Assembly: GCF_036971445.1 (NCBI RefSeq)
Contig: NC_091473.1
Location: 206,398,001 to 206,462,000 of the forward strand
Direction of reading: 5' to 3'
Source of the DNA: Narcine bancroftii
Lineage: Eukaryota
DNA length: 64,000 bases
How positions within the stretch are numbered: the first letter of the stretch is position 1; every line of letters begins with the position of its first letter. A model generated the notes under the pieces. That model did not search any database and had not been told where the DNA came from. It was given only the letters and a program-made list of their open reading frames with translations. Made by a program: the position numbers and the translations under genes. Below, piece by piece: positions 3,753-61,068 of this stretch.

Positions 3753-5028
3753 GTTATTATCCAACTGCACGAAAACCAACAAGGTCGTGTCAGATACAGC
3801 AATGAGCTCTCTGAACCCTTCTCCATTAACAATGGCGTGAAGCAAGGTTGTGTTCTCGCACCAACCCTCTTTTCAATCTTCTTCAGCATGATGCTGAACC
3901 AAGCCATGAAAGACCTTAACAATGAAGACGCTGTTTACATTCGGTACCGCACGGATGGCAGTCCCTTCAATCTGAGGTGTCTGCAAGCTCACACCAAGAC
4001 ACAATAGAAACTTGTCCGTGAACTATTCTTTGCTGATGATGCCGCTTTAGTTGCCCATTCAGAGCCAGCTCTTCAGCACTTGACATCCTGTTTTGTGGAA
4101 ACTGCCAAAATGTTTGGCCTGGAAGTCAGCCTGAAGAAAACGGAGGTCCTCCATCAGCCAGCTCCCCACCATGACTATCAGCCCCCCACATCTCCATCGG
4201 GCACACAAAACTCAAAACGGTCAACCAGTTTACCTATCTCGGCTGCACCATTTCATCAGATGCAAGGATCAACAACGAGATAGACAACAGACTCTCCATG
4301 GCAAATAGCGCCTTTGGAAGACTACACAAAAGAGTCTGGAAAAACGACCAACTGAAAAACCTCACAAAGATTAGCGTATACAGAGCCGTTGTCATACCCA
4401 CACTCCTGTTCGGCTCCAAATCATGGGTCCTCTACCGGCATCACCTACGGCTCCTAGAACGCTTCCACCAGCGTTGTCTCCGCTCCATCCTCAAAATTCA
4501 TTGGAGCAACTTCATCTCCAACATCGAAGTACTCGAGATGGCAGAGGCCGACAGCATCGAGTCCATGCTGATGAAGATCCAGCTGCGCTGGGTGGGTCAC
4601 ATCTCCAGAATGGAGGACCATCGCCTTCCCAAGATCGTGTTATATGGCGAGCTCTCCACTGGCCACCGTGACAGAGGTGCACCAAAGAAGAGGTACGAGG
4701 ACTGCCTAAAGAAATCTCTTGGTGCCTGTCACATTGACCACCGCCAGTGGGCTGATATCGCCTCAAACCGTGCATCTTGGTGCCTCACAGTTCGGCGGGC
4801 AGCAACCTCCTTTGAAGAAGACCGCAGAGCCCACCTCACTGACAAAAGACAAAGGAGGAAAAACCCAACACCCAACCCCAACCAACCAATTTCCCCTGCA
4901 ACCGCTGCACCCGTGTCTGCCTGTCCCGCATCGGTCTTGTCAGCCACAATCGAGCCTGCAGCTGACGTGGACTTTTACCCCCTCCATAAATCTTCATCCA
5001 CGAAGCCAAGCCAAAGAAAGAAAAAGAA
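3753..5028 (+). mobile_element. RTE-clade LINE, 5'-truncated
   Basis: GVKQGCVLAPTLF, LLFADD, FTYLG, QLRWVGH..RM...RLPK..LYGEL motifs. Stop at 4005-4007, frameshift near 4185, GAA/A-rich tail. Confidence 0.95.
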
Positions 5029-5171
5029 TATCTAACAACCAATTTCATACTGGAAGAACACCACTTGGCTAAAAGAATATTGGCTATTTCTAAATTTTCT
5101 CGGTCGTATTTTATGCGAAAGGACATAGAACAAATACTAGAATCTATCCATTTTGTGTCCCGAGATAAACG

Positions 5172-11843: not shown

Positions 11844-14759
11844 ACGATAGTTAAATCGGGCTCTCACCACATGCTTCGTTAAAAGGGTGTTCAGATGCAG
11901 ATAATTTTCATAGGTATTAGCATAAAAAGTTGTAAACGTTATTTGTCTCATGTCCTTCAATATTCTCCATAAGCTAAATACCCGCTCCCAATGAACACCC
12001 CCCGCTTCTATTCTGACCACCAGAGTGATCATGGTGAGAAACACGAAAATTTGTAGGCGCTGTAACTGAAATAAGTACACACTGCGTAATTTGATTATTC
12101 CTTGAATAAGGGCTTGCAAATATATCTTTGTTTTGTTTTTTGTTTTTTTATGAACTCTGTAACGCTCGGCTGAGTTCCTACAGAATTTTGATATGTTTTT
12201 ACCAGAAGGATCAACAACGTCCATCGGGCGTCTCTACTTGGAAGATGATTGAATGACATCGTTCTACTGATCGAATTCTTTCTCAATCAGAACAGAGTTC
12301 ATGATTCCACAATCCTCTCCTTTAACCGATAATAGATTCACAATGCATCAGATATTTTGATGTACAACGTATCTTGTGCCTGTTGTGAATTTCTGAGGAA
12401 AGGTAATGCGGAAATTGNNNNNNNNNNNNNNNNNNNNNNNNNNNNNNNNNNNNNNNNNNNNNNNNNNNNNNNNNNNNNNNNNNNNNNNNNNNNNNNNNNN
12501 NNNNNNNNNNNNNNNNNNNNNNNNNNNNNNNNNNNNNNNNNNNNNNNNNNNNNNNNNNNNNNNNNNNNNNNNNNNNNNNNNNNNNNNNNNNNNNNNNNNN
12601 NNNNNNNNNNNNNNNNNNNNNNNNNNNNNNNNNNNNNNNNNNNNNNNNNNNNNNNNNNNNNNNNNNNNNNNNTAACCTGCTGAAATTTTCCTATCTGGAG
12701 TGGAAAAACAGAATGGCATTCTCTCGTGTCCTTGATCGTCCTCTATTGCTCTAGAAGTTTGTTTGTTCCACTTCATGTGGCAAAAGGATCGATGGAAGTA
12801 TCAACTGTGACTATCTGCTTAGATTGGCCGTCAGGAGTAGCGGTCGCCCGTCTTAATGTTGACTCTGTGGCCACTGTCATCACGATCTAGCTAAGTTATT
12901 TCATTTTGAATGAGAATGCTATCACATGTTTGCAGATATATCGTCCACCCAATCCGCTGTTTGTCAGTTGTTGGTGCAGCAGAGTAGTAGGGTCATTGAG
13001 TAGCATTTGTGTTGCTGCCTTTGGTTTGCCGGATATTATTTATACTCACCCATGAAGTACTATGTGGTGTAGATTTGAGACTACTCCATCTTTCATATTG
13101 GTAACTGCAAGCAGAAATTGTAAAATTGAAGTCTTTATAAATATTAACATTGAAGATGAAAATCTCTGCCATACTGCTTTTGTGGAATGGGGCCGCCAGG
13201 ACTGAATGGACTTTGAAGTAACCAGAAAATAAGCCTTTAGACAGAGTACAGTCAGTAGCAACATTGGCGGGCAAAATGAGATAAAGGATTCTTGGAGTTC
13301 ATACCTTCTGTGGCAGGCTGTGAGATTAAAGATACAAGATACAAGTTATTATTGTTTTGGAGGGGTTTAAGTGGCCTTGATCAGGTCGAAAAGCATTAGG
13401 CTGCTGGCAATATTTTGCTGCATTGGATGTTATGCAATGGGAATATATAGAAAGACAAGTAGGTGGGTACAAAATGCATAATTTGAGTGATCAGTTCAGT
13501 AACATCCTATAACGTTGAAGTGATGAGTTTAAGGTAGATGCTGCCATGCATTAAGAATTTGAAATGCTGTTCGTGGAGGTAGGGCCACATGCAATTTGCT
13601 TTTTTAAACGATTAATGAAGAAGAGTCTAATAAAATTATCTTGCTGCATAAACGATTTCAATACATGAAATAAAAACGTGTTTTATTACATAGTCTCTTG
13701 TCTCCGCAATCTTGGTCAGTGAAGTAAACAACGAAAGTTAAGGAGAAATTAAAATATTTCCTCGCCACAGGGCATTTATGTCAAGGTTACGTGCGAGCAG
13801 AATGTTTCTTGGCATATTCAGACCGTTCGCCAACCTCTGTGTTGTTTATTTCTTATCTTCACATGTAAATTCAATCTAAACCTAAGTTTCGTCTCAACCC
13901 GATTACACACTCCTTAAAGCCGAGACATCAAGTCTAATGGGCTCAAGCTGAATAAGGCGACGATCACTGATTTGGTTATCCATTTCATTGAGAGAACATG
14001 GAAATTTTATCGGGATACGACGTGTCTGTTCAAAATAAAATAATGAAAAAGAGTTCCAACGAGGAACAAATAAACCATAGCCCCTGGTATTTTTTTATAG
14101 TGCGCAAAGAGAAATCGGGGTGATCCAGGGAGTCGGGCATCATGCATGAACAGAAATGGTCACCAAACACATCAGATCATAGCTCTTTGCACTGAATCTA
14201 TTATTGGTTCCTATCAGTCATTTTCACTGCCCATTGTAATGTACTCATATTGTCTAAGCCGCTGGGTTCCTTCAGATGTTTGTTTACATAGTTCCCAGGG
14301 CAGCCCAATAGAGTGCGATCTTGTTCTCGGAGATGCAAGATAGAGGCAATGAGGTTTTGTATCTGCTCCGCTATTCCACATATAATGATTCACAACAGAC
14401 GTCATTTTAATGTTCAACATCAATTATTAAATTCGAATATTACGCCCGAGTCCACTACTTTATTGACGGCATTCTTGATCATTATAGTCAAAAAAATAAC
14501 CAAAGCCGATTGGACAGTGGTCCAAGTATTTGTATCTCTTCGGGCTGTCTCCAGATCGAATCGTTGGGTATATTTCTCATCCACCACTTGGTTCCAGGCT
14601 TAACAAAACGATGTCTAATCCAATTAATCATTCACAAAAATAAGTATTCGAACGTTTCCCCACACTATCACATTCTGCATCATTGCCAGTTTGAAAGAAG
14701 TAATGTACTTCCCATCTGAATCACCTGGAACACCATGAAATGGCAAACAAACAAACTTT

Positions 14760-14783: not shown

Positions 14784-14954
14784 CAAATAGGGAACATGAG
14801 GGGGAGGGGGAGGGGGCACACAGCTTTGTGCTGTGCGGATGTCACACTGCCAATCAGAAGAGAGACCAGATGGCACATTTTTTCGTGCATTCGGTTTTAC
14901 AAAATTCTCAGTCAGGTCGATTCAGGTCAAATTCACCCGAAACTCAAAGGAGCT

Positions 14955-15006
14955 ATGTTATCTCTGTCTACTTATTGGCTTCTTACAGCAGTTTCTCTTT
15001 ACACTG
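14955..15006 (+). CDS. TRAV/TRDV: TCR alpha/delta V gene A1, leader exon
   Basis: MLSLSTYWLLTAVSLYT-G then gtaag; hydrophobic signal peptide with phase-1 donor. Confidence 0.92.
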
Positions 15007-15491
15007 GTAAGTTGACGGCATTTCCAATATCCCGCTTAATTCTGCTGCTGCAAAGGATATTTAATTAGTGAATTTCATGCATACACCGAAAGATTGGAAA
15101 TAAGGAGATTAACTCAGAATCGTGAATCCAATTCTTTGGCGAGCAATGTCCGAGAGGTTGAGGGAATAGTCAGGTCAATTTAAGCAGACGTTATGCACAT
15201 CTTTGGAAATTGTAACACTGGTACGTCACTCCTGTCGGCCTGGCGATTATCCTCCTGTTCCTACGATTTAAGGTCAATGTGAAGATGATGAAGGAAAGGG
15301 CTGGATATTATGGAAAGCAAGTTTCATTAATTTCGTCCATGCCGCTACCTTCTCTTGAAGTGTCATTTCATTTCTATTAATTATTTTTAATCTCAGACGT
15401 GTATCGCGGAAGGTAGCAGTTCTGGAAAATGTGCGCAGTTAGAAGATATTGGTGGTATTGGTAGATTCATGTTCTCCTCGGAATATTTCAG

Positions 15492-15798
15492 GACATTGTC
15501 GAGGCGACGCCGTGTCTCAGACACCAAGTACGATCACAGTGACTGAAGGAATGGACTCGAATTTGAACTGCAACTATACAGCGACAAGCACAAGCAACGC
15601 TGGATTAATATGGTACCGTATGTATCCAGGAAGATCACTCGACTTTTTGTTGATTAGAAGGCAATTTGACAGTGGGGGAAAACAAATTCCCGGTGAACGT
15701 TTCTCAGCGGAGCTCGATCATTCGAAGGGAATGGTTCCTCTGAAAATTACTGCAACGCAGCTGGGAGACGCCGCAATGTATTATTGTGCTCTGAGCCC
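15492..15798 (+). CDS. TRAV/TRDV: TCR alpha/delta V gene A1, V exon (apparently functional)
   Basis: tttcag acceptor in phase with the leader. DAVSQTP...LNCNY...IWYRMYPG...RFSAEL...VPLKITATQLGDAAMYYCALS; both Cys and the Trp present, no stops. Confidence 0.95.
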
Positions 15799-15837
15799 CA
15801 CAGAGGTACGGAACTGGGCTGAGACTGTACAACAACT
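15799..15837 (+). other. Recombination signal sequence (23-bp spacer) of V A1
   Basis: CACAGAG, 23 nt, ACAACAACT. Confidence 0.93.
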
Positions 15838-16353
15838 AACAGATCATCTCGCCGCGTATCAACGTGTGAAAACAAAGCTTTGAAAAATTATTTACTGCTC
15901 CGTCCATGCGTCACAACCCATGACTTTCGGTGATTATCCAATTTTGTGCTACTGATGAAATTATCTGAATGAAATAGCAGATACTATTTCTTGTCATGTA
16001 ATAAAACATCAATTGAATGTTAGACTGCCATTAGGTGGAGAAAGGATTTCCGTTAGCATTAGCATTGCTCGAAACCCGTGTAATGGAAAGAAAGTCCCTC
16101 CAGAAAAAAAGAGTGTCCGTGGGGAACTGCAGCCTCTGAGGCCCCACAATATTCTAGTGCAGTATAAATGATCGGCAAACGGCGCCCAAATCCAAACATC
16201 GAGCCCAATGAGGAAGCCTAAAGGCCCAAGGATCCTTCGAGAGTCCTCATTGTCTTTAGTATCACCTTAAATCCTTATACCGAAAACCGCTTCTCTGAAA
16301 ATTTCTGCAACGCAGCTGGGAGACGCCGCCATGTATTATTGTGCTCTGAGCCC

Positions 16354-16392
16354 CACAGAGGTACGGAACTGGGCTGAGACTGTACAACAACT
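16354..16392 (+). other. Second (orphan) 23-RSS, preceded by an LKISATQLGDAAMYYCALS stub
   Basis: Identical to 15799-15837. Confidence 0.93.
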
Positions 16393-16908
16393 AACAGATC
16401 ATGTCGCCGCGTATCAACGTGTGAAAACAAAGCTTTGAAAAATTATTTACTGCTCCGTCCATGCGTCACGACCCATGACTTTCGGTGATTATCCAATTTT
16501 GTGCTACTGATGAAATTATCTGAATGAAATAGCAGATACTATTTATTGTCATGTAATAAAACATCAATTGAATGTTAGACTGCCATTAGGTGGAGAAAGG
16601 ATTTCCGTTAGCATTATCATTGCTCGAAACCCGTGTAATGGAAAGAAAGTCCCTCCAGAAACAAAGAGTGTCCGTGCGGAACTGCAGCCTCTGAGGCCCC
16701 ACAATATTCTAGTGCAGTATAAATGATCGGAAAACGGCGCCAAAATCCAAACATCGAGCCCAATGAGGAAGCCTAAAGCCCCAAGGATCCTTCGAGAGTC
16801 CTCATTGTCTTTAGTATCACCTTAAATCCTTATACCGAAAACCGCTTCTCTGAAAATTTCTGCAACGCAGCTGGGAGACGCCGCCATGTATTATTGTGCT
16901 CTGAGCCC

Positions 16909-16947
16909 CACAGAGGTACGGAACTGGGCTGAGACTGTACAACAACT
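16909..16947 (+). other. Third (orphan) 23-RSS, preceded by the same stub
   Basis: Identical to 15799-15837. Confidence 0.93.
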
Positions 16948-19469
16948 AACAGATCATGTCGCCGCGTATCAACGTGTGAAATGCCTGCAGCTGGTGTGAA
17001 TCTTTTGGCCTCGAGTCGGTAGCAGCCCGCAGCCTGTGTGTTTTACACGCCTGTCAATCGCTAAGAGACGCCACATGCTTGTGTTGTAGAGGCCATCTCT
17101 GGCCCGTCACGATGGTCATCCTCTTCCTGTCGTCTCCTCTGATTCTCCGCCTCGACGGGCATATTCTTCCTGTTGCTGGTGCCCTGCATTGGTACACTCC
17201 ACTCACAGAGTCTTAAACCCCACGTAGCCGTCATCGGACACTTTTCTTCTATACTCCGCGGTCGCAAATATCAAAATAAACCACTCTCGATTATTTTGTC
17301 AGGCCACTGTCAGCCTGTACAGAGCCTTGGCACTACAGCTGAGTGCAAGAAAACCACAGGTCAGCAAGAAAGGCAGCGCTACCATTACAGCAGTCCCGGC
17401 AGTGCCACCATTACTTCTAATTCTGCGCCTACAGTCACTTGGCCAGATTAGAGCTGTGGCTTTGGATAATTAGACAGAATATCTCTTCGTCTCTCTCCTT
17501 TTGTCATCCGAGATTTTTCTCTGGTTCTGAAACCTTAACAGTGGAAAGAATTTCGCTTTTTAAATTAAAGCCATTATTGTATTGGAATAACCCGACTCAA
17601 CAAATTAAAAATCAATTCTATCCTGTTTCACCTGTTTATGCATCTTATTAGCCATTCAAATTCGCATCCAGATATCACTTTTATTTACTTAAAATGCCTC
17701 GAGTTTATGGACATTTCATTGATAAAGCATCACCAGTGAAATTACTGCAACTTCAACCTGACTTTGCAGAGCAATAGACTACAAATACAGGTGACGAGTG
17801 TTTGGCTGCAATGGTACCGCAAGGACGTGAATATGAATCATCACCACATCCTGAACCGGGGCATAGAGGAAACAGATAGGAAACATTTCAGGGCGCAGTT
17901 TTAGATACGTTTGTCATAGATATTACAACATATGGGCCACTTCAATAGATGTTGGCAAATCATTCTCATTCTCCATGCTATGAGACTTTGGGTGCTCATT
18001 TAATTTGCTAGGAAAATGCAGTATCCCTTTCATAGAAGGAGAGTTATTTCTTTAGATTAACTAATTTCGGAAACTTCTTGGTCTTTTTCAATCTTTCCCA
18101 CCTTTTGCTGTCCCTATAGTTGATCATGATTAGTATACCTGTGCTTCGGGGAAGATGCCAATATTTGTAAATATCCATTTCTAACCGGTCACACTCATAA
18201 CTCGCCCGCCCCACCCACGTCGGACAAAATATATATGAGATTTAAAACAGGAATACTCCACTCAGCCACACTGTTGATCTACTTGGATGGGGCTCGTATC
18301 TGGTCAGCGAAGATTCTTTTCTCTGTATTGACTCGGTTATCTCCATTGCTTGCACTTTTATTTGTAATATTACACACTGCTCATTATAAACAAAATGTGA
18401 CACTTACACAGCACTTATGCTTTATCATTGCATTACCTGGTGCAAATTATGTGTGTTGGCTTGTCTGTATAGGAGGCAAAACAAAGCTATTCATTCCGTA
18501 TCCGTTGAAAGGACAATGAACAATTAAATGTCATTTTCTGCATAAGGATAATGTAAATAAATATGTACCTGATATTATGTTTGAACACTATTTTACAATG
18601 TGGCATTCCGATTTGAAATGAGGCTGGCCGAATATTATAAGGATCAGTTTCACTGCAATAGATGTTTCAGAATCTAACATCCATCGAAACGTCTCTTTGG
18701 ATCGACACATTAAACTGAAGTGAAAGCAGACATACGGTTCATAAGCTGGGAAGAGCTATTTACTTTAATTTAGCTTTATGTTTCACGCCTTATATGTGCG
18801 GCTAAAATCCGAAAAGCGTCGAGTGTTGAAATAGTCCAAGCCCCCCAGCATGCCCACTCCAATAAAAATGTCCCAAGTAATACCACCTGCCTGTTTCGCT
18901 GACATCCTTCGAATCCTGGCAATTTAGCCGTCTAGTCATCTTAAACATTGCAAAAATATATATCTGCATTACCTCCTTCGGGCACCTGTTCCACACACAC
19001 GACACATTCGTGCTCCCTAAGTTCGTCTCAAATCTATCTTCCCTTCACTTGTGTTTCCAGAATTCCCTGCTCTGGGTAAAAGACTACTTTAATCCTATAT
19101 ACACCGATCTATCCTTCCAGATCTGGCCTCTGAGTCCTGGCAACATCCTGATAAATATTATCTTCATCATCTCGAGATTTACAACTTATTCTTTTATTGC
19201 ACAGTAATTTAATCAGAAGACAATAATATGAATATGGTGGAATAAAGGACACATACAACTACAAATTACGTTCAAATATCTGTAGCCATTACTGTAGCTG
19301 ATACGAATTAATCGGCGGAGAGACCCGTGACGAAAATATCGAACCGTTTAGAGATACTCTGTATCAGTAGGCCTCTGTTCTACAATATATCTCAGCTTCA
19401 TACCAGTGAGTGCATAGGTCCTGACCATGTTCGACCGCTGAAATAAAACACTTCACGTTTCTAAACTAC

Positions 19470-21340
19470 TGTAGAGCTCGTGGAAAGAACCATAGACTTT
19501 TTGATTCAAACCAAGATTTTTATTAGCAAAAGACGGGAGCTCTTCACAGGTGGCCGACCAGTGTGGAATGATCCGACTTGGCTAGGGACACAACCCTTTA
19601 AGGCCCAGTCAGTAGGCGTGGCTAAGCTCTCAGACAATCACTGTAAGCACAGTCATTACATACTCTAGATGCTGTAACTATTCTTCTTTTCTTTGGCTTG
19701 GCTTCGCGGACGAAGATTTATGGAGGGGGTAAAAAGTTCACGTCAGCTGCAGGCTCGTTTGTGGCTGACAAGTCCGATGCGGGACAGGCAGACACGATTG
19801 CAGCGGTTGCAAGGGAAAATTGGTTGGTTGGGGTTGGGTGTTGGGTTTTTGCTCCTTTGCCTTTTGTCAGTGAGGTGGGCTCTGCGGTCTTCTTCAAAGG
19901 AGGTTGCTGCCCGCCAAACTGTGAGGTGCCAAGATGCACGGTTTGAGGCGTTATCAGCCCACTGGCGGTGGTCAATGTGGCAGTCACCAAGAGATTTCTT
20001 TAGGCAGTCCTTATACCTTTTCTTTGGTGCACCTCTGTCACGGTGGCCAGTGGAGAGCTCGCCATATAACACAATCTTGGGAAGGCGATGGTCTTCCATT
20101 CTGGAGACGTGACCCATCCAGCGCAGCTGGATCTTCAGCAGCGTGGACTCGATGCTGTCGACCCCTGCCATCTCGAGTACTTCGACGTTAGGGGTGTAAG
20201 CGCTCCAATGGATGTTGAGGATGGAGTGGAGACAATGCTGGTGGAAGCGTTCTAGGAGCCGTAGGTGGTGCCGGTAGAGGACCCATGATTCAGAGCCGAA
20301 CAGGAGTGTGGGTATGACAACGGCTCTGTATACGCTTATCTTTGTGAGGTTTTTCAGTTGGTTGTTTTTCCAGACTCTTTTGTGTAGTCTTCCAAAGGCG
20401 CTATTTGCCTTGGCGAGTCTGTTGTCTATCTTATTGTCGATCCTTGCATCTGATGAAATGGTGCAGCCGAGATAGGTAAACTGGTTGACCGTTTTGAGTT
20501 TTGTGTGCCCGATGGAGATGTGGGGGGGCTGGTAGTCATGGTGGGGAGCTGGCTGATGGAGGACCTCAGTTTTCTTCAGGCTGACTTCCATGCCAAACAT
20601 TTTGGCAGTTTCCGCAAAGCAGGATGTCAAGCGCTGAAGAGCTGGCTCTTCAGCTGTAACTATATACATTGATTATAGGTCTGTACTATCACATTCACCC
20701 CTTCTTAGAGAACTGATCCTGGGGTGGAAGGGCTGAAGAGGGAGAAGGGAAGGAAACAAAACGAGGGAGAGAATGAAAGGAAGGGGTAGGTTAAGGACTG
20801 TAGCAGTCAGGGGGTCTGACCATCCGGCGTGACCGCTGTGGTGCCGGGATTGGGGTCGCTGGAGTGGTGTCACCAGTGGGCTCATCGGGAGCAACCGCTC
20901 CTTCGCTCAATTCCCCAGCCGTGTTGTCGGCAGAGTGGCCTGGGTCGTTGGTGTGCTGTTGATCCTTCTGTTTAGGCACGGGGCCTGGGGAATAAAGAGT
21001 TGGGGAAGTTTGGGTTGGGAGGGGTTGCTGGGCCTACCGCATCCTGAGCTAGGTCCCACACCGAAACAGTGTCCTCCCGCCCATCTGGGAACTCAACATA
21101 TGCGTAATGCGGGTTCACATGGTGTAGAGTCACTCGGTCGACCAAGGAGTCATTCTTTGAGTGCCGGACATGGCGTCGCAAAAGGATGGGGCCAGGGACA
21201 GTGAGCCATGCTGGTACTGTAGTTCCTGATTAGGATTTACTCAGGAAAAGGAACATCCTTTCGTGGGGGGTGGCATTTGTTGCGGTACATAGGAGGGAGC
21301 GGATGGAGTGTAAAGCACTATTGAGAACCTCCTGCCAGTA
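19470..21340 (-). mobile_element. Gypsy-like LTR retrotransposon 3' fragment (integrase end, PPT, 3' LTR)
   Basis: Minus strand reads YWQEVLNSALHSIRSLLCTATNATPHERMF and RRHVRHSK..NPHYAYVEFPDGREDTVS..DLA. PPT aagaaggggtgaa abuts an LTR TGTGATAG...CTACA (20693 to 19470). Confidence 0.85.
19682..20652 (-). mobile_element. RTE LINE, 5'-truncated, with an open ORF; inserted in the Gypsy LTR
   Basis: 308-aa ORF ending in CNRCNRVCLSRIGLVSHKRAC. 11-bp TSD gctgtaactat (19671-19681 and 20653-20663). Confidence 0.95.
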
Positions 21341-24608: not shown

Positions 24609-25466
24609 AACACTGGTTTGTTGCAACCAGCTCTCAGCAAAGGGAACACTTACTCCGCTGAACGGACGTGATCAGATGTCGATCAGTTTCCTAGTGTGTA
24701 GTAAATTCGTTCCAAACATTCTTTGTTTCAAGGAGCCGAGCAGAATTTTTTTCAGTGTTTCAAACAAGCGAGACTTCAACTGAGTGACTATGACCTCGCT
24801 TCCATATCGAGTACAAGATTAACAGGAATTTGCATCTTTCTGTGCGTCCTGTTGCTTTTACAATCATGAGAAGAGACACCTTAATTTTTCTAATCCCATC
24901 GACTTGATAATGATCGAATCAAAATGTAACATTTATTTTGGGGTAAATCATACTTTGTGCTTGTTATGAATTGCTGCGGATATGTGATGCAGAGATATCA
25001 ACTCNNNNNNNNNNNNNNNNNNNNNNNNNNNNNNNNNNNNNNNNNNNNNNNNNNNNNNNNNNNNNNNNNNNNNNNNNNNNNNNNNNNNNNNNNNNNNNNN
25101 NNNNNNNNNNNNNNNNNNNNNNNNNNNNNNNNNNNNNNNNNNNNNNNNNNNNTCCAGAGAGAGGGATAGATCTATGAATGGATAGGTAGATAGATAGAAA
25201 AATAGATAGAAGAAGAGATGGATAGAGAGATCAGATGTGACAGAAACATAGGTTGGCAGGGATCGAGAATGATTGACATAGCACAGGAAAAACGAGCAAC
25301 GTATGTCAAGAAATTGCGTACATTTTAGGAGATCAATACATCATGAAACTCTGAACGATGACATAATCTCCCGTCAAGTAAAGGGCTTGCCCCTAACTAA
25401 TGATGTATCAGGCATAAACATGGTGTAATGTTCCCACACATCCCTTCTTTTTTTGTAAGCACCACC

Positions 25467-25653: not shown

Positions 25654-28600
25654 ATATTATGGCAAGAACTTTTCTCTGAGGGAATTGGTATTGGAAAGAG
25701 CCCATAGAGCTTTAAGAAGAACACCCTCAGCTGGTCAACCACCGAGACTGGTAATGATTCGATGTTTGAGTTATTTGCAAAAAGAAGAAATACTTTGATT
25801 TGCAGAACAAATTATGAGACAACGACAAACCCTATCACTGATTAGGAATAGCAGAGTCATTTTTATCCGGATCTGAGTCAAGATGTCATTCAAAGTCAAC
25901 GTCGATTTAATCCAGTTAAAGAAGTTTTGTGGCATAAAGGTTATGTCAACTTTTCGATACCCTGCAGTGTTGAAGGTGTTTTATGGAGACTATCAATTTC
26001 AGTTTTTTGAAACTGATCGTGCAGCAATGATTTTTGCTGATTCATTGCCAGATATAAGAGGACAAAGTCGTAGTTTATCATTATCTCCTAAAGAAAAATC
26101 TGGTTGTTCTGGAAACGGAAGAAATGGCAGAAATGGGAAAAACGGGGAATGGAAAGAGTCTACTTCCTTCTGAAATGGGATCTTTGAGATTGAAATCTTC
26201 TGGATGAAAAGAAGAATTTTCTTATTCTATTTTTTCTTTTGTTATTATAATATTTTGATGTTATTGACTGTTTGGCTGGGGAGGGAGAGATTAGCACTAC
26301 GCTCTTTATTAGTCATCAGCCACTTGTGGCTGACCCACACCCACTTTTTGTTCAGGGGATTACTACCTTTTTGTTGTTTTTTTGGGGGGAGGGGATTTTC
26401 TTTTTTTTCTTTATTATTTTTATTTTCATTTTAGTTAGTTTTTAATTTGTGATTTTTTTCTATTGGAGGGCAAATATACGTTGATTTGAGTTTTTATATA
26501 AAGATATTATATTACCAGTTTACCTATCTCGGCTGCACCATTTCATCAGATGCAAGGATCGACAATAAGATAGACAACAGACTCGCCAAGGCAAATAGCG
26601 CCTTTGGAAGACTACACAAAAGAGTCTGGAAAAACAACCAACTGAAAAACCTCACAAAGATAAGCGTATACAGAGCCGTTGTCATACCCACACTCCTGTT
26701 CGGCTCCGAATCATGGGTCCTCTACCGGCACCACCTACGGCTCCTAGAACGCTTCCACCAGCATTGTCTCCGCTCCATCCTCAACATCCATTGGAGCGCT
26801 TACATCCCTAACATCGAAGTACTCGAGATGGCAGAGGTCGACAGCATCGAGTCCACACTGCTGAAGATCCAGCTGCGCTGGATGGGTCACGTCTCCAGAA
26901 TGGAGGACCATCGGCTTCCCAAGATCGTGTTATATGGCGAGCTCTCCACTGGCCACCGTGACAGAGGTGCACCAAAGAAAAGGTTCAAGGACTGCCTAAA
27001 GAAATCTCTTGGTGCCTGCCACATTGACCACCGCCAGTGGGCTGATATCGCCTCAAACCGTGCATCTTGGCGCCTCACAGTTTGGCGGGCAGCAACCTCC
27101 TTTGAAGAAGACCGCAGAGCCTACCTCACTGACAAAAGGCAAAGGAGGAAAAACCCAACCCACCAATTTTCCCCTGCAACCGCTGCAATCGTGTCTGCCT
27201 GTCCCGCATCGGACTTGTCAGCCACAAACGAGCCTGCAGATGACGTGGACTTTTTACCCCCTCCATAAATCTTCGTCCGCGAAGCCAAGCCAAAGAAGAA
27301 TTATAGGTATTTAGTAATAATAGTAGATACGTCAAAATTGAGGTTTGCTACTTTTAATTTTCAAGGATTAAATAACCCAATTAAGCGTAAGCGAGTCTTG
27401 GCGTATATTAAGAAAATGAAAATTGATATTGCTTTTTTACAAGGAACATATTTGAAAGTGAAGAAAAGTATGAAATTAAAGAGGGACTGGGTAGGGCATG
27501 TGTATTATTCTAGGGCTAAAGGCGTAGCAATTTTAATACATAAAAATTATCTTTTGCATTACAATCAATGGAAGAAAAGGCAGGATGTATTATTAAATTG
27601 AATTGTAAGATTTTAGCGAATTTTGGACTTTACTTAATATTTATGCCCCAAATGCAGATAATGAATTATTTATTTCAGATGCATTTTTATGTTTGTGTCA
27701 GGCTAATGATAATATTTTAGTTGGTGTTGATTTTAATTGTGTTTTGGAATATTTATTAGATAAACTACCGAAGTAAGTTAAAAAAAAATCCAAGATGGCA
27801 ATTCAGGTCCAAGCGTTGATGAAAGATCTTAATTTAGTAGATATTTGGAGACGTGTTAATCCAAGAGAGAAAAAAAATTTCCGTTTATTCATCTTGACAT
27901 GGATCGTTTTCAAGGATTGACTTATTTTTAGTATCGGCACATTTACAATGGAAAGTACAACAAGTTGAATATAAAAGTAGGGTGATTTCAGATCATATGA
28001 AACTTCTGAGAAAATTCAAATGGCCTATCGTTGGAAGTTTAATACAGATGAGCAGAAAATAGAATTATCTAGGCTGAAATTGAAATATAATACTTTGCAA
28101 TCTTATCAATTTGAATGTGTGATTAATAGGACTAAACAACGGTATTATGAATACAGAGAGAAAGCACATAAGGTATTGGCATGGCAATTAAAGAAGGAAC
28201 AGATATCGAGGACTATTCATGCTGTTAGATGGAATTCTCTTATTACTTATAAACCTCGTGAGATTAATCATGAATTTTATTCATTTTATAAGAAGTTATA
28301 TACATCTGAAGGAAAACAAGAAACTGGATCGAATGATATTTTTTATCACAGTTGAATTTACCAATATTAGAGGATGGAGATATACAGGAGTTAGAAGAAC
28401 CATTTACTGATTCGTAAATTTAAATGGCTATGCTGGAAATTCCGAATGGTAAATCGCCTGATGATGATGGATTTTCGGTTAAATTTTATAATTGTTTTAA
28501 TGATGAATTATCTACAGAGTTTGCGGATATATTACGTCAAGTTGGAAATCATTATGAATTACCTGAGTCTTGTTCTAGTGGTTTAATTACAGTAATTCCT

Positions 28601-33838: not shown

Positions 33839-34018
33839 GTGCGCNNNNNNNNNNNNNNNNNNNNNNNNNNNNNNNNNNNNNNNNNNNNNNNNNNNNNNNN
33901 NNNNNNNNNNNNNNNNNNNNNNNNNNNNNNNNNNNNNNNNNNNNNNNNNNNNNNNNNNNNNNNNNNNNNNNNNNNNNNNAAGCAAGCGAAAGAGCGAAAG
34001 TTTCCTGTTTTGTTGCAG

Positions 34019-34301
34019 GTGACTTTGGTGATTATTCTATCTCCTAGCATCAATATGAGGTTTCGGAGGAAGAAGGACGAACTGTAACGCTTCACTGTAA
34101 TTACACGGCTACATACCGTGCAGATACAGCCGTCCGGTACATCCTGTATCCTGGATATGCGCCACGATATGTACTGAATATATTAATCACTGGGTTCGAA
34201 TGTCATCGTCGGATATCTGAAAACTCTTTTCTGCTGTTTATCAGAAAACAAATCGGCTGCTTCTTTTAACAATATGTAGGCGTTCTTGTCTTCGATCACA
34301 A
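34019..34301 (+). pseudogene. TCR V pseudogene, family B copy 5
   Basis: ttgttgcag acceptor, DFGDYSIS*HQYEVSEEEGRTVTLHCNY...YILYPGYAPRYVLNI. Frameshifts; the Y-x-C end is deleted; no leader seen. Confidence 0.88.
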
Positions 34302-34340
34302 CACATTGCCACAGATATTTAGCACATCCGTACAAAAACC
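34302..34340 (+). other. 23-RSS of pseudogene B5 (near consensus)
   Basis: CACATTG, 23 nt, ACAAAAACC (consensus nonamer). Confidence 0.9.
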
Positions 34341-39599: not shown

Positions 39600-40816
39600 C
39601 ATAGGAACATAGGAAGTAGGAACAGGAGTCGGCCAAAAATGGCCCATCGAGCCTGATCCGCCATTCAATATGATCATGGCTGATCTAATTTATGACCTAT
39701 CTCTACCTATCTACCTTCACCCCATATCCCCTAATTCCTCTATCATGTAAAAATTTATATAACCGAATTTTAAATATGTTTAATGAGGCAGCCTCAAATA
39801 TCTCCCTGGTTAGAGAATTCCAAACATTCACTACTCTCTGGGAAAAAATATTTTACCTCATCTCTGTCCTAAATCTACTCCACTGAATCTTGAGACTGTG
39901 TCCTCACATTTTAGTTTCCCCAGCCAGCTCAAAAAAACCTTTCTACATCTATCCTATCCATACATTTCATAATCCTATATGTTTCTAGAAGATCTCCTCT
40001 CATTCTTCTGAACTCGAGCGAATACAATCCTAGACTATTTAATCTTTCAACCTAGTAAACCTCCTCTGGACCATTTCCAAACCCACTATATCCTTCCTCA
40101 AATATGCAGACCAGAACTGGACACAGTATCTAGGTTCGGTCTCACCAGTTCCTTATACAGTTGCAACATTACCTCCCTACTCCGGAATTCAATTCCTCTA
40201 GTGATGAAGGCCAACATTCCATTTGCCTTCTTAATAACCTGCTGCACCCGCAACCTAACTTTTTGCGATTCATGCACAAGCACTCCCAGGTCCCTCTGCA
40301 CAACAGCATGCTGTAGTTTTTCTCCCTTTAAATAATATTTAGCTCTTTTATTTTTCTAGCCAAAGTGGATAACCTCACACTTGCTAACATTGTACTCCAT
40401 CTGCCAGACTTTTTCCCACTCATCCAGCTTAACTATGTCCCTCTGCAGACTCTCCACATCCTCATTACAATTTGCTCTTCCACTCAATTTGGTGTCATCT
40501 GCAAACTTGGCTACACCACATTTTGTCCCCTCCTCCAAGTCATCAATGTAAATGATGAACAGTTGGGGGCCTATCACTGACCCCTGCGGCACCCCACTTA
40601 CCACTCTCTGCCAACCTGATAAACTCCCTTTTATCCCGACTCTCTGCCTCCTGTCAGACAACCAATTTTCAATCCAGGCCAATATACTTCACCGGACTCC
40701 TCTTTTCTGTAACTTACTGATAAGTCTCTTGTGCGGCACCCTTTCAAACGCTTTCTGGAAATCCAAATATACAACATCAACCTGTTCCCCTCTATCCACC
40801 GAACCCATTATATCCT
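39600..40816 (-). mobile_element. CR1 LINE 3' part, young subfamily
   Basis: SGVPQGSVIGPQLFIIYIDDL..KFADDTKLSG; (ttcctatg) tail; same subfamily as 59017-61068. Confidence 0.92.
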
Positions 40817-40949
40817 CTGTGTTGTAGCCCCTCTGAAGATGCTTGCACTTCCCACTAAATGAACCGGAGAAGATTCTGAGCTGTAAAACACAAAGTTGAT
40901 CCAGGTGCTTTTATTTGTATGAAATAAAACCATAAAATTATGGAGGATC

Positions 40950-46874: not shown

Positions 46875-46926
46875 ATGATGGGCCTACCCACTTTCTGGCT
46901 TCTTACTTCAGTTGTTCTCTACACAG
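46875..46926 (+). CDS. TRAV/TRDV: TCR alpha/delta V gene A2, leader exon
   Basis: MMGLPTFWLLTSVVLYT-G then gtaag; paralogous to the A1 leader. Confidence 0.92.
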
Positions 46927-47303
46927 GTAAGTTGATGGCGTTTATACTATTTAGTTCTTTCCGACTAGGAAAATAATATTTATTCAGTGAACTTAATTCA
47001 TCAGTACAATATTGACAAATTACCAAGTCGGAATAAGAACTGAATAAGGAGTATATCCAGCTCTCAGTCGAGTGGTGGAGGGATACAATACTGTCAATTA
47101 AAGCAGGACTTTCCGCCATCCCGGTGGAAGGGTCACGCTGTTAAAGATAAATGCGAGTGCCCTGGAATGACTCTCTTCTTCCGGAATATCCTGAATGAAT
47201 GTGTGGGATATTCATTGGTGACAGTTCCATTTAATCGAAATCATCGATATTTCTCCACCTTCCCTTGAAATGGCATTTCAACTTATTATTTTTTTAGACG
47301 AGC

Positions 47304-47984
47304 TGTAATGGAAGGTTTAAACTGTGTCTTTTACTTCTGATGCTGCAAGGCTGAGAACATGCTTGTTTATTAGAATCAGCAGACATAATCTAATTTACAC
47401 CATGAGGCCCAGGGTGCCTATTGAGTAGAAACACCTAAATTCCACCATGGGGCCCAGGATGCAGTTGAATCAGAAGACATTATCTAATTTACACAATGGG
47501 GCCCAGGGATGCAGTTTTCTTTTGTTGGTCACAGACTGTCAGGAGACCTTGAAGATAATTAAATCATTTGTTCAAAGAAATAAGATCTGAAGTAAACAAC
47601 TTTTGGGTAATATAAGCCATGGTCCCACTGCTGAAGTTTGAGACTCTCCAAAAGGTGGCAACATCTCTCAGCAAGAAGAAGAACTTCAAGAGTCCAGCTA
47701 ACGTCCGGGTCGAGGGAGGTGGAGAAGCTGCTACCGGCACCGACAACCTACTACAAGTGTGCAGTCCGTGCCTCGCTTCGACAGTTGGAACCAGTCCAGG
47801 CGTTGATGAGTATAATTGGGAAGCACTTGCATATTGTAGTGTGAATTCAGCTTTAGATTTACTAATGAAGACTTGTATAAACTGAACTGCTCTCGGTGTG
47901 TCTGTGTCTATTTTCTTTCGGTAGCTCAAACGCTGTGACCAATCTAAAACGAACAAAATGAGAGGTATAAGTTTACCCAAGACA
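47304..47984. mobile_element. Solo LTR in the A2 leader-V intron
   Basis: 681 bp, TG...CA ends, 5-bp TSD CGAGC/CGAGT, absent from the A1 intron, internal ~48-bp repeat x3. Confidence 0.7.
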
Positions 47985-48063
47985 CGAGTACATGGTGGGA
48001 ACTCTGGGAATGTGCGCAGTGAGGCGATACTATTGGATTCACGTTTACTTTGGAATATTACAG

Positions 48064-48370
48064 GTTATTGTCGAGGCGACGCCGTTTCTCAGATACCGGG
48101 TATGATCATAGTGAATGAAGGGGAAGATGTGAAGTTGAATTGTAACTATACAGCTACAGGCATAAATAATCCTGGATTAATATGGTACCGTATGTATCTT
48201 GGTGGATCACTTGTCTTCCTGATGATCAGAACAAACTTTGATGGTGAGAGGAAGAAAATTCACGGAGAACAGTTTTCAACTGAGCTCGACCATATGAACC
48301 GCACGGTTCCGCTAATGGTGTCTGAAACGCAGCTGAGAGACGCGGGCATGTATTATTGTGCTCTGAGACC
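48064..48370 (+). CDS. TRAV/TRDV: TCR alpha/delta V gene A2, V exon (apparently functional)
   Basis: ttacag acceptor. DAVSQIP...LNCNY...IWYRMYLG...VPLMVSETQLRDAGMYYCALR; 62 of 98 aa identical to A1 by hand count. Confidence 0.95.
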
Positions 48371-48409
48371 CACAGAGATACATAACGGGGCTGAGACTGT
48401 ACAAGAACT
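48371..48409 (+). other. 23-RSS of V A2
   Basis: CACAGAG, 23 nt, ACAAGAACT. Confidence 0.93.
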
Positions 48410-49116
48410 AACAAATCATCTCGTGAATGAAGCTTTGAAAGACGATTAACCATTCCTTCCAGGTATCACAACACGAATGCACGGCTTGCGATAATTATAA
48501 AATTTTACACTACTGATAAAATAGACTTTTATCAGATTAAATGTACCATTGATTATAATTGAATAAAGCAAAAAAAGGATTCTTAGGAAATTTCCGTTAT
48601 TCTTGTAAGAAGACCAAGATTTCGCATTAGCATTTTCTTTGCCTGAGCGACCTTACTGGGAGAGGACGAAAAAGAAACGAGTATCTCCATAGAGTCACAG
48701 AGATTTTGCGAATTCACACGCAGTACTCCCTATTCATCGAATACGTACAAGACACTAATTCGTTTCAAACTGAGCCCAGGCCAATCCCTGGAGCAAACCT
48801 ACAACAGATCGAGGAGGCAAGTAACACCTAGGCCCATTCGTAAGCCCTCCTTGCCCTCAGTCTGTGTAAAAAGGTTCAGATAGCTGGTTTGCATGAGTTG
48901 GTATGCAACAACCCACAGCTTTATTTGTATCCTGTGATATCAAGTGGCTTCCTTTGTCGTTTTCTCGCCCTCATGTCTCAACTTCGCATACTTGTGTATT
49001 TCAGTTGCAGAGACCATGACTGGTCCGCCACCACGGTCACCGTACTTAGGGTCGTCTCCTATGCTTCGTTACTACGGGACCTTTGCCTCAGTACTCCTAC
49101 TCTGTGGAAGTGCCAA

Positions 49117-49207
49117 CACTAACGCAAACCCTGACCCTAACCCTAACTGCAAAACTAACCCTAACACTATCCCTAACTGTAAAGCTAAGACTATCCCTAA
49201 TACTAAC
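49117..49207 (+). repeat. Degenerate (CCCTAA)n hexamer array
   Basis: About 15 in-register hexamers, including several exact ccctaa. Confidence 0.75.
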
Positions 49208-49669
49208 GTGGGGCTGCTGCCGTAAACAGCCGGAACCATCTTGAGCCAGAGACAGCGGTCGTAGGATTTTAAATTTAAATACTGCAGGTTTCCTTAAAGG
49301 CCGTTTAAAGTCTGTTCAGAAACGTCATGAGGAACTGTGCGGTGCGAAGCTGCGCATGAGTGCTGTGACTCCGCATCCCGCGGGTCAGCACACTCTTCAG
49401 CGCAGTCTTAATAGCATCTTTGGTAACGCAGCCATTAATTCTCAATTTGCGTCCATAGTCACTATATCTACAACCTGAACTTAGAGAACAGGAGAACGAC
49501 AAAGACAGATGATAAATGGTTGGCAGCACTTGTACCAGAAGATAGGAAATTTATTTCACACCACATCCTGATTCGGTGTACAGAGCGGACAGAGAATGAC
49601 CTTTAGAGAGTACAGTTTCTCCTCTCTCAAAATTGCACCGATCATAGCTCAAGTATGAAAAATATTTTG

Positions 49670-49996: not shown

Positions 49997-50837
49997 CATT
50001 ACGACCCGAGAGGTCCCATAAACCCAGCAGCAATAAATATTCACCAAGACAAATGGTTACTTAAAAAAAATGTTGCTTATAATTATCTTTAAACATGAAA
50101 ACAGAATCACACTTTAACTTAACTTAACTAACTTAACTTAATCCCCTTCTAATTCTAAGCGCATTTGTGCATAATATGTGTGTAAGTTCAGAAAAGTTAT
50201 TTTTTTACAGTCCAATCTCACTTCTCATTCCTCCAATTTTACTAGTTGCAGGCAATTCTAATTCTGTGCACAGAATTTAACATTTATAAAGCTCACCAGG
50301 CTTTGGTGCTTGAAAGATAAATGGTTACTGTGCACAGAATTTAACATTTATAAAGCTCACCAGGCTTTGGTGCTTGAAAGATAAATGGTTACCACTCAGG
50401 AAGGTGCTTGTCAGTTTCCATAGAGATATTTGTTGTTCCAGGACATTCACAACCATTAGCCACTTCAGTGTCTGGCTGACAGAACCTGCTCCTTCAGGTT
50501 TCTTTCAGGTCACCACAGATTTCCTTTTTGCTTCTCACATTCCAAGTGAACATTAGACAGTCAGTCGTCTCCTCTTGCATGAACCACAATGCCTTTGCCA
50601 GGCCAAACTGTGACTCCACCAAGATCCTTCGACTCTGGCCTATTGTACGCCACAATCTGTTAGTGACGTTTCTTGACCACTACAAAGGTCTTGCAAAAGC
50701 TGTGGAGCCGATATGTCTAGCATTAGCAGAGCTTCAGTATTTCAGATAAGATCTGTTTTACTGTGTTTTTATGTGACCTACTCTGACAAACAATTTCCAA
50801 TTGATCTCTCAAAAACATATCTATATACTCTGTCACT
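49997..50837 (-). mobile_element. Solo LTR, with an internal 64-bp tandem duplication (50264-50391)
   Basis: 4-bp TSD ATAA; same position and TSD as 57589-58475, so it predates the cassette duplication. Confidence 0.65.
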
Positions 50838-59016: not shown

Positions 59017-61068
59017 AGTGTACAAAGCTGCAAAGAGCAGTGGGAAACTGGAAGATTGGGAAAACTTTAAGAGACAACAAGGGGTTACAAAGCGGGTAAT
59101 AAAAAATGGGAAAAAGGATTGTGAAAGTAAATTGGCACAAAATATAAAAAAAGAAATAAAAAAAATTTATAAATATATAAAACGGAAGAGGGTGGCCAGA
59201 GTTAACATAGGACCCTTGGAGGATGAGAAAGGAAAACTGGTAGCAAAAAATGAGGAAATGGCCGAGGCATTAAACAAATATTTTGTGTCAGTCTTCACGG
59301 TGGAACACACGTCCAGCATGCCCAAGTGCGGAGTTAAGGATACGAATGTTGGGGAGGGCCTTGATAAAATAGTTGTTACAAAGGAAGTAGTGATGGAGAA
59401 ACTAATGGGACTAAAGCCAGACAAATCACCTGGTCCTGATGATATGCATCCAAGAGTTCTGAAGGAAATGGCAGAAATTATAGTTGATGCATTGGTGGTC
59501 ATATACCAAAATTCCTTGGATTCTGGGCAGGTCCCGGCAGACTGGAAGACAGCAAATGTCACGCCACTTTTTAAGAAGGGATGTAGGCAGAAGACTGGAA
59601 ATTATCGGCCAATTAGCTTGACGTCTGTGGTTGGAAAAATGCTTGAAGCTGTCATTTAAGATGAAATAGTGAAACATTTGGAACATAAGAGTTGAATCAG
59701 GCAGACGCAGCATGGTTTTAGAAAGGGAAGATCTTGTTTGACAAACTTGTTAGGATTCTTTGAGGATATAATGGGTGTGGTGGATAGAGGGGAACAGGTT
59801 GATGTTGTATATCTGGATTTCCAGAAAGCGTTTGATAAGGTGCCGCACAAGAGACTTATCAGTAAGTTACAGGAAAGTGGAGTCCGGGGAAGTATATTGG
59901 CCTGGATTGAAAATCTCTGACAGGAGGCAGAGAGTCGGGATAAATGGGAGTTTTTCAGGTTGGCAGAGAGTGGTAAGTGGGGTGCCGCAGGGGTCAGTGT
60001 TAGGCCCACAACTGTTCATCATTTACATTGATGACTTGGAGGAGGGGACAAAATGTGGTGTAGCCAAGTTTGTGGATGACACCAAATTGAGTGGAAGAGC
60101 AAATTGTAATGAGGATGTGGAGAGTCTGCAGAGGGACATAGTTAAGCTGGATGAGTGGGAGAAGTTCCGGCAGATGGAGTACAATGTTAGTATGAGTGAG
60201 GTTATCCACTTTGGCAAGAAAAATAAAAGAGCTGAATATTATTTAAAGGGAGAAAAACTACAGCATGCTGTTGTGCAGAGGAACTTGGGAGTGCTTGTGC
60301 ATGAATTGCAAAAAAGTTAGGTTGCAGGTGCAGCAGGTTATTAAGAAGGCAAATGGAATGTTGGCCTTCATCACTCGAGGAATTGAATTCAGGATAGGGA
60401 GGTAATGTTGCAACTGTATAAGGTACTGGTGAGTCCGAACCTGGAGTACTGTGTCCAGTTCTGGACTCCATATTTGATGAAGGATATACTGGCTTTGGAG
60501 ACGGTCCAGAGGAGGTTTACTAGGTTGATCCCTGGGATGGAGGGATTGACTTATGATAAAAGATTAAATCGTCTAGGATTGTATTCGCTCAAGTTCAGAA
60601 GAATGAGAGGAGATCTTATAGAAACATATAGGATTATTAAGAGTCTTCTTTGGCTTGGCTTCGCGGACGAAGATTTATGGAGGGGGTAAAAAGTCCACGT
60701 CAGCTGCAGGCTCGTTTGTGGCTGACCAGTCCGATGCGGGACAGGCAGACACGATTGCAGCGGTTGCAAGGGAAAATTGGTTGGTTGGGGTTGGGTGTTG
60801 GGTTTTTCCTCCTTTGCCTTTTGTCAGTGAGGTGGGCTCTGCGGTCTTCTTCAAAGGAGGCCCCCCCACATTATTAAGAGTATGGATAGGATAGATGTAG
60901 GAAGGTTTTTTTAGCTGGTCGGGGAAATCAAAATGTGAGGACACAGTCTCAAAATTCGGGGGAGTAGATTTAGGACAGAGATGAGGAAAAATAGTTTTTT
61001 CCCAGAGAGTAGTGAATGTTTGGAATTTTCTAACCAGCGAAGTGGTTGAGGCTGCCTCATTAAACATT
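59017..61068 (+). mobile_element. CR1 LINE, young, truncated at both ends
   Basis: KSPGPDDMHPRVLKE, DWKTANVTPLFKKG, NYRPISLTS, YLDFQKAFDKV, GVPQGSVLGP; few stops or frameshifts. Confidence 0.95.
60645..60860 (-). mobile_element. Short RTE 3' end nested in CR1
   Basis: 12-bp TSD attattaagagt (60633-60644 and 60870-60881); extra C-run at the 5' junction. Confidence 0.92.

Follow-up and report, generated by a model that had tools for sequence, protein, structure and literature searches.

The stretch of DNA analysed here (the window) covers 64,000 nucleotides of the genome of the ray Narcine bancroftii (assembly GCF_036971445.1, contig NC_091473.1, positions 206,398,001 to 206,462,000 of the forward strand). 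It contains a T-cell receptor (TCR) V gene, named A1, that is trailed by serial copies of its own recombination signal sequence (RSS). Comparison of the window with itself reveals an exact 555-bp unit behind A1, present in 2.24 copies. Three 39-nt 23-RSSs (CACAGAG-23-ACAACAACT), letter-for-letter alike, start at positions 15799, 16354 and 16909. Among these three signals, only the first belongs to a complete V gene with a leader, an intron and an open V exon. As argued below, the array is likely to be a real germline tandem duplication and a neutral structural variant.

The units follow each other head-to-tail on the + strand. Unit 1 (15738-16292) consists of a 134-bp part a, made of the last 61 nt of the V exon within framework region 3 (FR3), RSS1 and the 34 nt that follow, and of a 421-bp part b of flanking DNA. 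Unit 2 (16293-16847), 98.0% identical to unit 1, begins with a 61-nt FR3 relic (16293-16353), continues with RSS2 (16354-16392) and then repeats flank b. Unit 3 is partial (16848-16981). It corresponds to the first 134 bp of the repeat, with an FR3 relic (16848-16908), RSS3 (16909-16947) and 34 nt, and it is identical to 16293-16426. Beyond it, a novel junction leads into flank Y (16982-17500, + strand), the original continuation of the flank of unit 1. In translation, the coding end ...MYYCALS precedes each of the three signals. Units 2 and 3 have neither leader nor most of the V exon, and their relics are preceded by in-frame stops in flank b. They are 5′-truncated V relics that have kept an intact RSS, identical to RSS1. 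Tandem Repeats Finder does not report the array because its longest period, 500, is below 555. No N gap adjoins the array, the nearest ones being at 12418-12672 and 25005-25152. Neither terminal repeats nor a target-site duplication of a mobile element are found around the copies, which keep an exact 555-bp register. Inspection by eye of 15838-15880 and 16982-17000 gave no convincing CTCF-like motif past the RSS.

The parent of the array, A1, has the organization of a complete V gene on the + strand. Its leader exon (14954-15006) reads MLSLSTYWLLTAVSLYT, then carries the split codon G|GA, and ends with TACACTG before the donor GTAAGT. The leader intron (15007-15491, 485 bp) opens with GT at 15007 and closes with AG at 15490-15491. 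An open frame with the segments ...LNCNY..., WYRMYPG and ...MYYCALS makes up the V exon (15492-15798). This exon carries the conserved Cys23, Trp41 and Cys104 and matches the Pfam V-set domain (E=1.9e-14). The full-length single-domain matches in the PDB are TCR alpha chains (E about 1e-12), the matches that score above them being multi-domain single-chain variable fragment (scFv) constructs. RSS1 (15799-15837; heptamer CACAGAG, 23-nt spacer, nonamer ACAACAACT) is flush with the coding end. It matches the consensus at 6/7 positions of the heptamer and 7/9 of the nonamer, and its CAC is intact. Judging from its sequence, A1 is a functional TCR alpha/delta-type V gene, a V segment alone having no power to separate alpha from delta use.

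Reads were available from four runs, all in the form of contigs. Run X1 is DNA, probably from the assembled sample, X8 is RNA, and X5 comes from organism B. In an X8 contig, the last letters of the leader (CTCTTTACACT) are joined straight to 15491/15492, which corresponds to splicing of the leader intron. The X8 contigs of the V exon end at 15796, 3 bases short of the heptamer, and none enters the RSS, as expected from the junctional diversity of rearranged transcripts. These contigs differ from A1 by 1-2 mismatches (for instance 15557G and 15706G). Moreover, contigs of the V exon and flank are 2-4 times as deep as unique flank, and the region attracts many variant contigs, which points to close paralogs elsewhere in the genome. 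Because of the mismatches and of these paralogs, the spliced RNA may come either from A1 or from a near-identical sister copy. At 15557, the assembly has T (TCG, Ser), whereas contigs from each of the four runs read G (GCG, Ala); an allelic difference, a paralog or an error of the consensus would account for this discrepancy in the V exon.

The order of the locus before duplication can be read from a second V gene, the paralog A2 (48064-48409, + strand). The leader of A2 lies at about 46875-46926 and its V exon extends to 48370. A single 23-RSS follows (CACAGAG-23-ACAAGAACT, 48371-48409), of the same type as that of A1. Identity between the two genes is 77% in the V exon and 88% across the FR3 end and the RSS, and their flanks remain alignable. 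Part b aligns with 48410-48880 of the A2 flank, and flank Y is colinear with about 48880 to 49500. Thus, unit 1 and the sequence from 16982 onward together align colinearly with the A2 flank, where 16292|16982 corresponds to about 48880. Since unit 1 and Y are colinear with the flank of A2, the ancestral order is read as X-a-b-Y, where X stands for what precedes part a; the present order is X-a-b-a-b-a-Y. The same homology identifies flank b as resident DNA and leads to reject the idea that it is an inserted mobile element.

These results agree with what an earlier note on this DNA had read from the letters. The note described a 555-bp period with three identical RSSs, a single RSS in A2, three variants shared by copies 2 and 3 and absent from copy 1, and a return, after the third copy, to the homologue of A2 position ~48880. 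The size of the insert has to be corrected. The extra DNA relative to an A2-type flank amounts to 689 bp by colinear alignment, instead of the 686 bp proposed.

Besides A1, the window holds two V segments on the same strand, A2 and a pseudogene (33980-34340, ...VTLHCNYTATY...). The pseudogene has stops and frame breaks, and its 5′ part is masked by the N stretch directly upstream (33845-33979). Its signal at 34302 (CACATTG-23-ACAAAAACC) is intact and is the best RSS in the window. As A2 and this pseudogene have one RSS each, multiple signals are peculiar to A1 within the window. Two further differences separate the surroundings of A1 and A2. The leader intron is 485 bp long in A1 (15007-15491) and about 1137 bp long in A2 (46927-48063), which implies an insertion or a deletion since the two genes split. 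Degenerate telomere-like repeats (CCCTAA/ACCCTA) occur in the A2 flank at 49105-49200 and have no counterpart in the A1 flank.

The letters that differ among the units give information on their history. Unit 1 and unit 2 differ at 11 of 555 sites, and the recount agrees with the earlier note that 10 of these 11 differences are transversions. Divergence is similar in the signal-bearing part a (3/134) and in flank b (8/421), about 2% in both. In contrast, no difference separates unit 2 from unit 3 over 134 bp, and the preceding 68 bp are also identical. At the rate observed between units 1 and 2, 4.0 differences would be expected over these 202 bp (Poisson P=0.018). Three variants split unit 1 from units 2 and 3, namely A/T/T at 15749/16304/16859, A/C/C at 15775/16330/16885 and C/G/G at 15848/16403/16958. 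The G at 16403/16958 is derived, as both unit 1 and A2 have C. When polarised with A2, derived states fall on both units (15749, 15775, 15990 and 16062 in unit 1; 16403 and 16470 in unit 2). With an outgroup 24% diverged, this distribution speaks weakly against a single burst of copying errors.

Can the array be an artefact of assembly? In this explanation, the true locus would have one (or two) RSSs, and the rest would result from mis-assembly or consensus error among near-identical V cassettes. The reads bear directly on this question. A 742-nt X1 contig (16952-17693) crosses the novel a|Y junction at 16981|16982 with 0 mismatches over its whole length. It begins exactly 30 nt (k-1) to the left of the junction, like a de Bruijn unitig at a branch. 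Starting k-1 before the junction, this contig indicates that the junction is present in the reads. Letters specific to unit 1 and to unit 2 are each found in zero-mismatch X1 contigs, at 15749 and 15775 for unit 1 (contig 15707-15805) and at 16470 for unit 2 (contig 16404-16544). Furthermore, a b|a junction must occur in the reads for an assembler to build it, false haplotype duplication yields exactly two copies and not a-b-a-b-a, and, as mentioned above, the array does not adjoin an N gap. On the other side, the 2-4-fold depths and the many variant contigs signal paralogs close enough to confuse an assembler. The assembly also departs from all contigs at 16731 and at 15557, and the transversion-rich differences are often located at the borders of homopolymer runs. 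Balancing these elements, an artefact is considered unlikely, though it keeps some weight.

A germline duplication thus remains the likely reading, and several observations have to be counted against it. Firstly, none of the contigs listed bridges the b|a junction (16292|16293), whose sole support is that the summed depth stays even, at 38-42, in the bins covering 16222 to 16503. Secondly, contig depths sum over paralogs and cannot serve as a gauge of copy number, that is of two versus three RSSs. The DNA runs that cover the region also probably come from the assembled individual and are in that case not independent of the assembly. Thirdly, none of the contigs listed is assignable to a joint of RSS2 or RSS3. 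A weak X8 signal at about 16877-16908 is not assignable either, the unit-2/3 letter at 16885 being ancestral and probably common to paralogs. Fourthly, at 16731 the sole X1 contig bears the letter of unit 1, so that consensus errors or popped bubbles may account for some of the 11 differences between units 1 and 2. The earlier note had warned of consensus error. The warning can be set aside at three or more of the 11 sites, where zero-mismatch contigs carry the letters, and it stands at 16731.

The last point concerns the spectrum of the differences. The 10:1 excess of transversions contrasts with the roughly 1:1 spectrum between A1 and A2 (P=0.006 at p=0.5), whose ratio of transitions to transversions is 41:32 for the V exon and 29:30 for the near flank. 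Variants of the read contigs on the region show ratios of 11:22 in X1 and 8:16 in X5, and against 1:2 the excess of 10 out of 11 is not unusual (P=0.075). At six or seven of the 11 differences, one of the two states lengthens an adjoining homopolymer run. Transient-misalignment mutation, conversion from paralogs and consensus error are all compatible with this pattern. The transversion excess is counted against a genuine duplication. The existence of the array is not affected, because it rests on the junctions.

Other contigs give a view of related forms of the region. One X1 contig of depth 8 links 16851 to 16984 through 18 other letters and runs from b into Y without a third copy. It represents the undisturbed state, carried by another allele or by a paralog. 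Part a opens with CTCT, which this contig also contains, and a 4-nt microhomology may thus exist where b meets a, subject to the reservation that a single depth-8 contig, possibly from a paralog, is the source. At the a|Y junction, microhomology amounts to at most 1-2 nt. In organism B, pieces of V and of unit-2-type flank are present, and no array junction appears among the X5 contigs listed. In the same run, a V-RSS contig, 96% identical, departs from the window sequence after 15845, and a contig identical to the unit-2-type flank (16397-16530) starts at the equivalent of 15842. These two contigs overlap by GATC, and organism B or a paralog could thus carry an insertion here that duplicated 4 bp of its target. 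Finally, a 31-nt stretch of unit 2 (16533-16563) has a summed X1 depth of about 6670, is deep in all runs and has flanks that are unrelated. Over this short length it matches an AT-rich repeat family of high copy number, and unit 1 is spared the match by its C at 15990.

How did the array arise? Its three breakpoints are located at 15738 (61 bp upstream of the heptamer), 15871/15872 (34 bp past the nonamer) and 16292 (455 bp past the nonamer). One idea is that RAG made the array in germ cells, by an open-and-shut joint, a hybrid joint or a transposition; the germline-joined genes of cartilaginous fish would be a parallel. However, 0 of the 3 breakpoints coincide with a heptamer/coding border (15799, 16354 and 16909), the RSSs are intact and no signal joints are seen. 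Because of the positions of the breakpoints, RAG is not regarded as the maker of the array; this origin was rejected and has almost no probability left. The copying would instead have been of a replicative or recombinational kind. At least two events are required, because a single simple tandem duplication cannot yield a-b-a-b-a followed by Y. The derived G shared by units 2 and 3 and the lack of differences between them over 202 bp indicate two steps. In the most economical history, an older duplication of a-b would first have occurred at the putative CTCT microhomology, starting 61 bp inside FR3, and its products would now be about 2% diverged. In a second and recent step, a third a would have been copied from unit 2 and joined non-homologously to Y, with the loss of 18 nt. 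This step may have proceeded through unequal crossing-over followed by a deletion, or through a microhomology-mediated template switch. Of the copying modes suggested in the earlier note, template switching is a reasonable origin, whereas rolling-circle copying finds no specific support. A different history is possible, with a single multi-switch event and, after it, gene conversion that acted between units 2 and 3.

Considering the properties of the signals, consequences for rearrangement may be envisaged. The three signals, with their near-identical 61-nt coding flanks, stand within 1.2 kb behind one V promoter, and RAG could use any of them. In thymocytes, the relic signals would be as cleavable as RSS1, would share the same accessible chromatin and could compete for RAG. 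A join at RSS2 or RSS3 would create a leaderless and sterile relic-J joint, while the intact V gene and RSS1 would be kept upstream. A later join from an upstream V to a downstream J could delete the sterile joint. Action as a decoy or as a stepping stone is thus plausible, as a possible consequence of any V pseudogene or orphan RSS that carries a signal. The retry would bring no new capability, since in the TCR-alpha locus an upstream V-alpha can always rearrange again to a downstream J. The earlier note had also pointed to a TATAAA at about 16163 in each unit. The + strand of the 64-kb window has 41 copies of this motif, and about 0.36 would be expected per unit. Found at 16163 and 16718 in the array, it stands at chance level and was rejected as a promoter hint.

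It may then be imagined that the extra signals have been kept by selection, either as decoys that lower the productive use of A1 or as stepping stones that would place the intact V beside the J region for a second try. Some facts are in line with such a role. The RSSs are identical and their 61-nt coding flanks almost so, and no discrimination by RAG would be expected. RSS3 is nearest to the downstream partners and would be favoured under the linear RAG-tracking model (PMC4995090), and orphan RSSs are used in vivo (PMC4995090). Nevertheless, no sign of selection is perceptible. With 0-2% divergence, the array is young. It is restricted to A1 in the window, its signal-bearing part is no better conserved than its flank, and the undisturbed form of the flank occurs in the same sample. 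Every V-alpha can, in addition, retry after a non-productive join without extra RSSs. A selected regulatory array is consequently improbable. Its more specific version, a fixed and selected device for RSS dosage in which J-proximal decoys of equal strength would tune the productive use of the V gene, is very improbable.

Another function to be considered is that of dedicated deleting elements resembling the mouse deltaREC sequences, the relic RSSs acting as non-coding partners that delete downstream D-delta/J-delta DNA. It is true that the relics lie in a V cluster of TCR alpha/delta type and that their 23-RSSs are bona fide but attached to no usable coding segment, in agreement with the definition of deltaRECs (PMC4995090). 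However, any rearranging V of the cluster deletes the same DNA, and the relics are evidently recent by-product copies of a V end. Such a dedicated role deserves hardly any credence. Even taken jointly, a selected decoy or deleting function is doubtful, and the array is most likely neutral or slightly costly.

Elsewhere in the window, several other repeats were observed. Two direct repeats of 345 bp (582-926 and 2088-2432), 100% identical and 1506 bp apart, adjoin an interspersed repeat (202-582). Either a local duplication of very recent date produced them, or they are the terminal repeats of some small element. The interspersed repeat belongs to a family of about 1 kb with 93-98% identity, also present at 4061-5030, 19679-20649 (- strand), 26514-27300 and 60646-60860. 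It carries the RSS-like strings CACATTG-24-CCTCAAACC and CACAGTT-22-AAGAAGACC, which are false RSS matches. The members of a 770-bp inverted repeat pair (40047-40817 versus 59762-60528) are 94% identical, and a 64-bp sequence stands in two perfect tandem copies at 50264-50392.

With respect to its significance, the array illustrates how truncated V relics and orphan RSSs may arise by ordinary local duplication, without RAG. Such relics and signals would be raw material for elements of the deltaREC or Kde type. By itself, the array reveals no new mechanism. It belongs to known kinds of objects, namely truncated V relics, orphan RSSs and local tandem duplications. A literature search by exact phrases ("tandem RSS", "duplicated RSS"), in itself a weak test, retrieved no V(D)J paper, and none was found on a V gene trailed by copies of its RSS in series.

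As to the way in which it was built, the array may be compared with microhomology-mediated tandem duplications and with complex template-switch rearrangements of the fork stalling and template switching/microhomology-mediated break-induced replication (FoSTeS/MMBIR) type. The resemblance lies in the head-to-tail copies, the putative CTCT microhomology, the second and non-homologous junction and the 18 nt lost at the insertion point. Unlike what one multi-switch event would produce, the divergence pattern in the ray suggests two events, the mechanism being deduced from the junctions alone. As to its content, the array recalls the human IGH locus, where groups of 5′-truncated VH pseudogenes (VH3, VH4) have been further duplicated (PMC2212390). 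In both cases, the 5′ part is lost and the 3′ end kept, the relics lie among functional V genes, and a local duplication was followed by more. In contrast with the human groups, the ray relics retain only 61 nt of V, their RSSs are still identical to that of the parent, and they are placed 0.5 and 1.1 kb directly behind this intact parent in head-to-tail orientation.

A third comparison concerns the signals. Like the mouse deltaREC1-5 sequences (PMC4995090), the delta-deleting elements (PMC2198968) and the Kde/RS elements of the immunoglobulin kappa locus, the relics are bona fide RSSs without a usable coding segment. Use of deltaREC or Kde elements by RAG gives non-coding deleting joints and cuts productive rearrangement. 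In the mouse, the orphan but bona fide RSSs deltaREC1-5 take nearly 10% of the joins to the 12-RSS of Trdd2, they are said to diminish repertoire diversity, and RAG activity at their locus shows directional tracking (PMC4995090). A difference is that deltaREC2/3 are conserved across species and that their use has been measured, whereas the ray relics are recent copies known from sequence alone.

Finally, the array has the layout of an experiment. Three identical signals, 555 bp apart and bordered by near-identical coding flanks, form a natural competition substrate in which each unit can be distinguished by a few letters. Artificial substrates with two RSSs in series have been used to study the choice made by RAG, and there too identical signals compete at different distances from a partner signal. 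In contrast with such constructs, the array is natural and chromosomal and belongs to a cartilaginous fish, and unit-specific letters in the coding and signal-end flanks would separate the outcomes. Linear scanning would favour RSS3, whereas diffusion would use the three RSSs equally. If long reads confirm the array, it could thus report positional bias in signal choice by RAG in the thymus of a basal jawed vertebrate.

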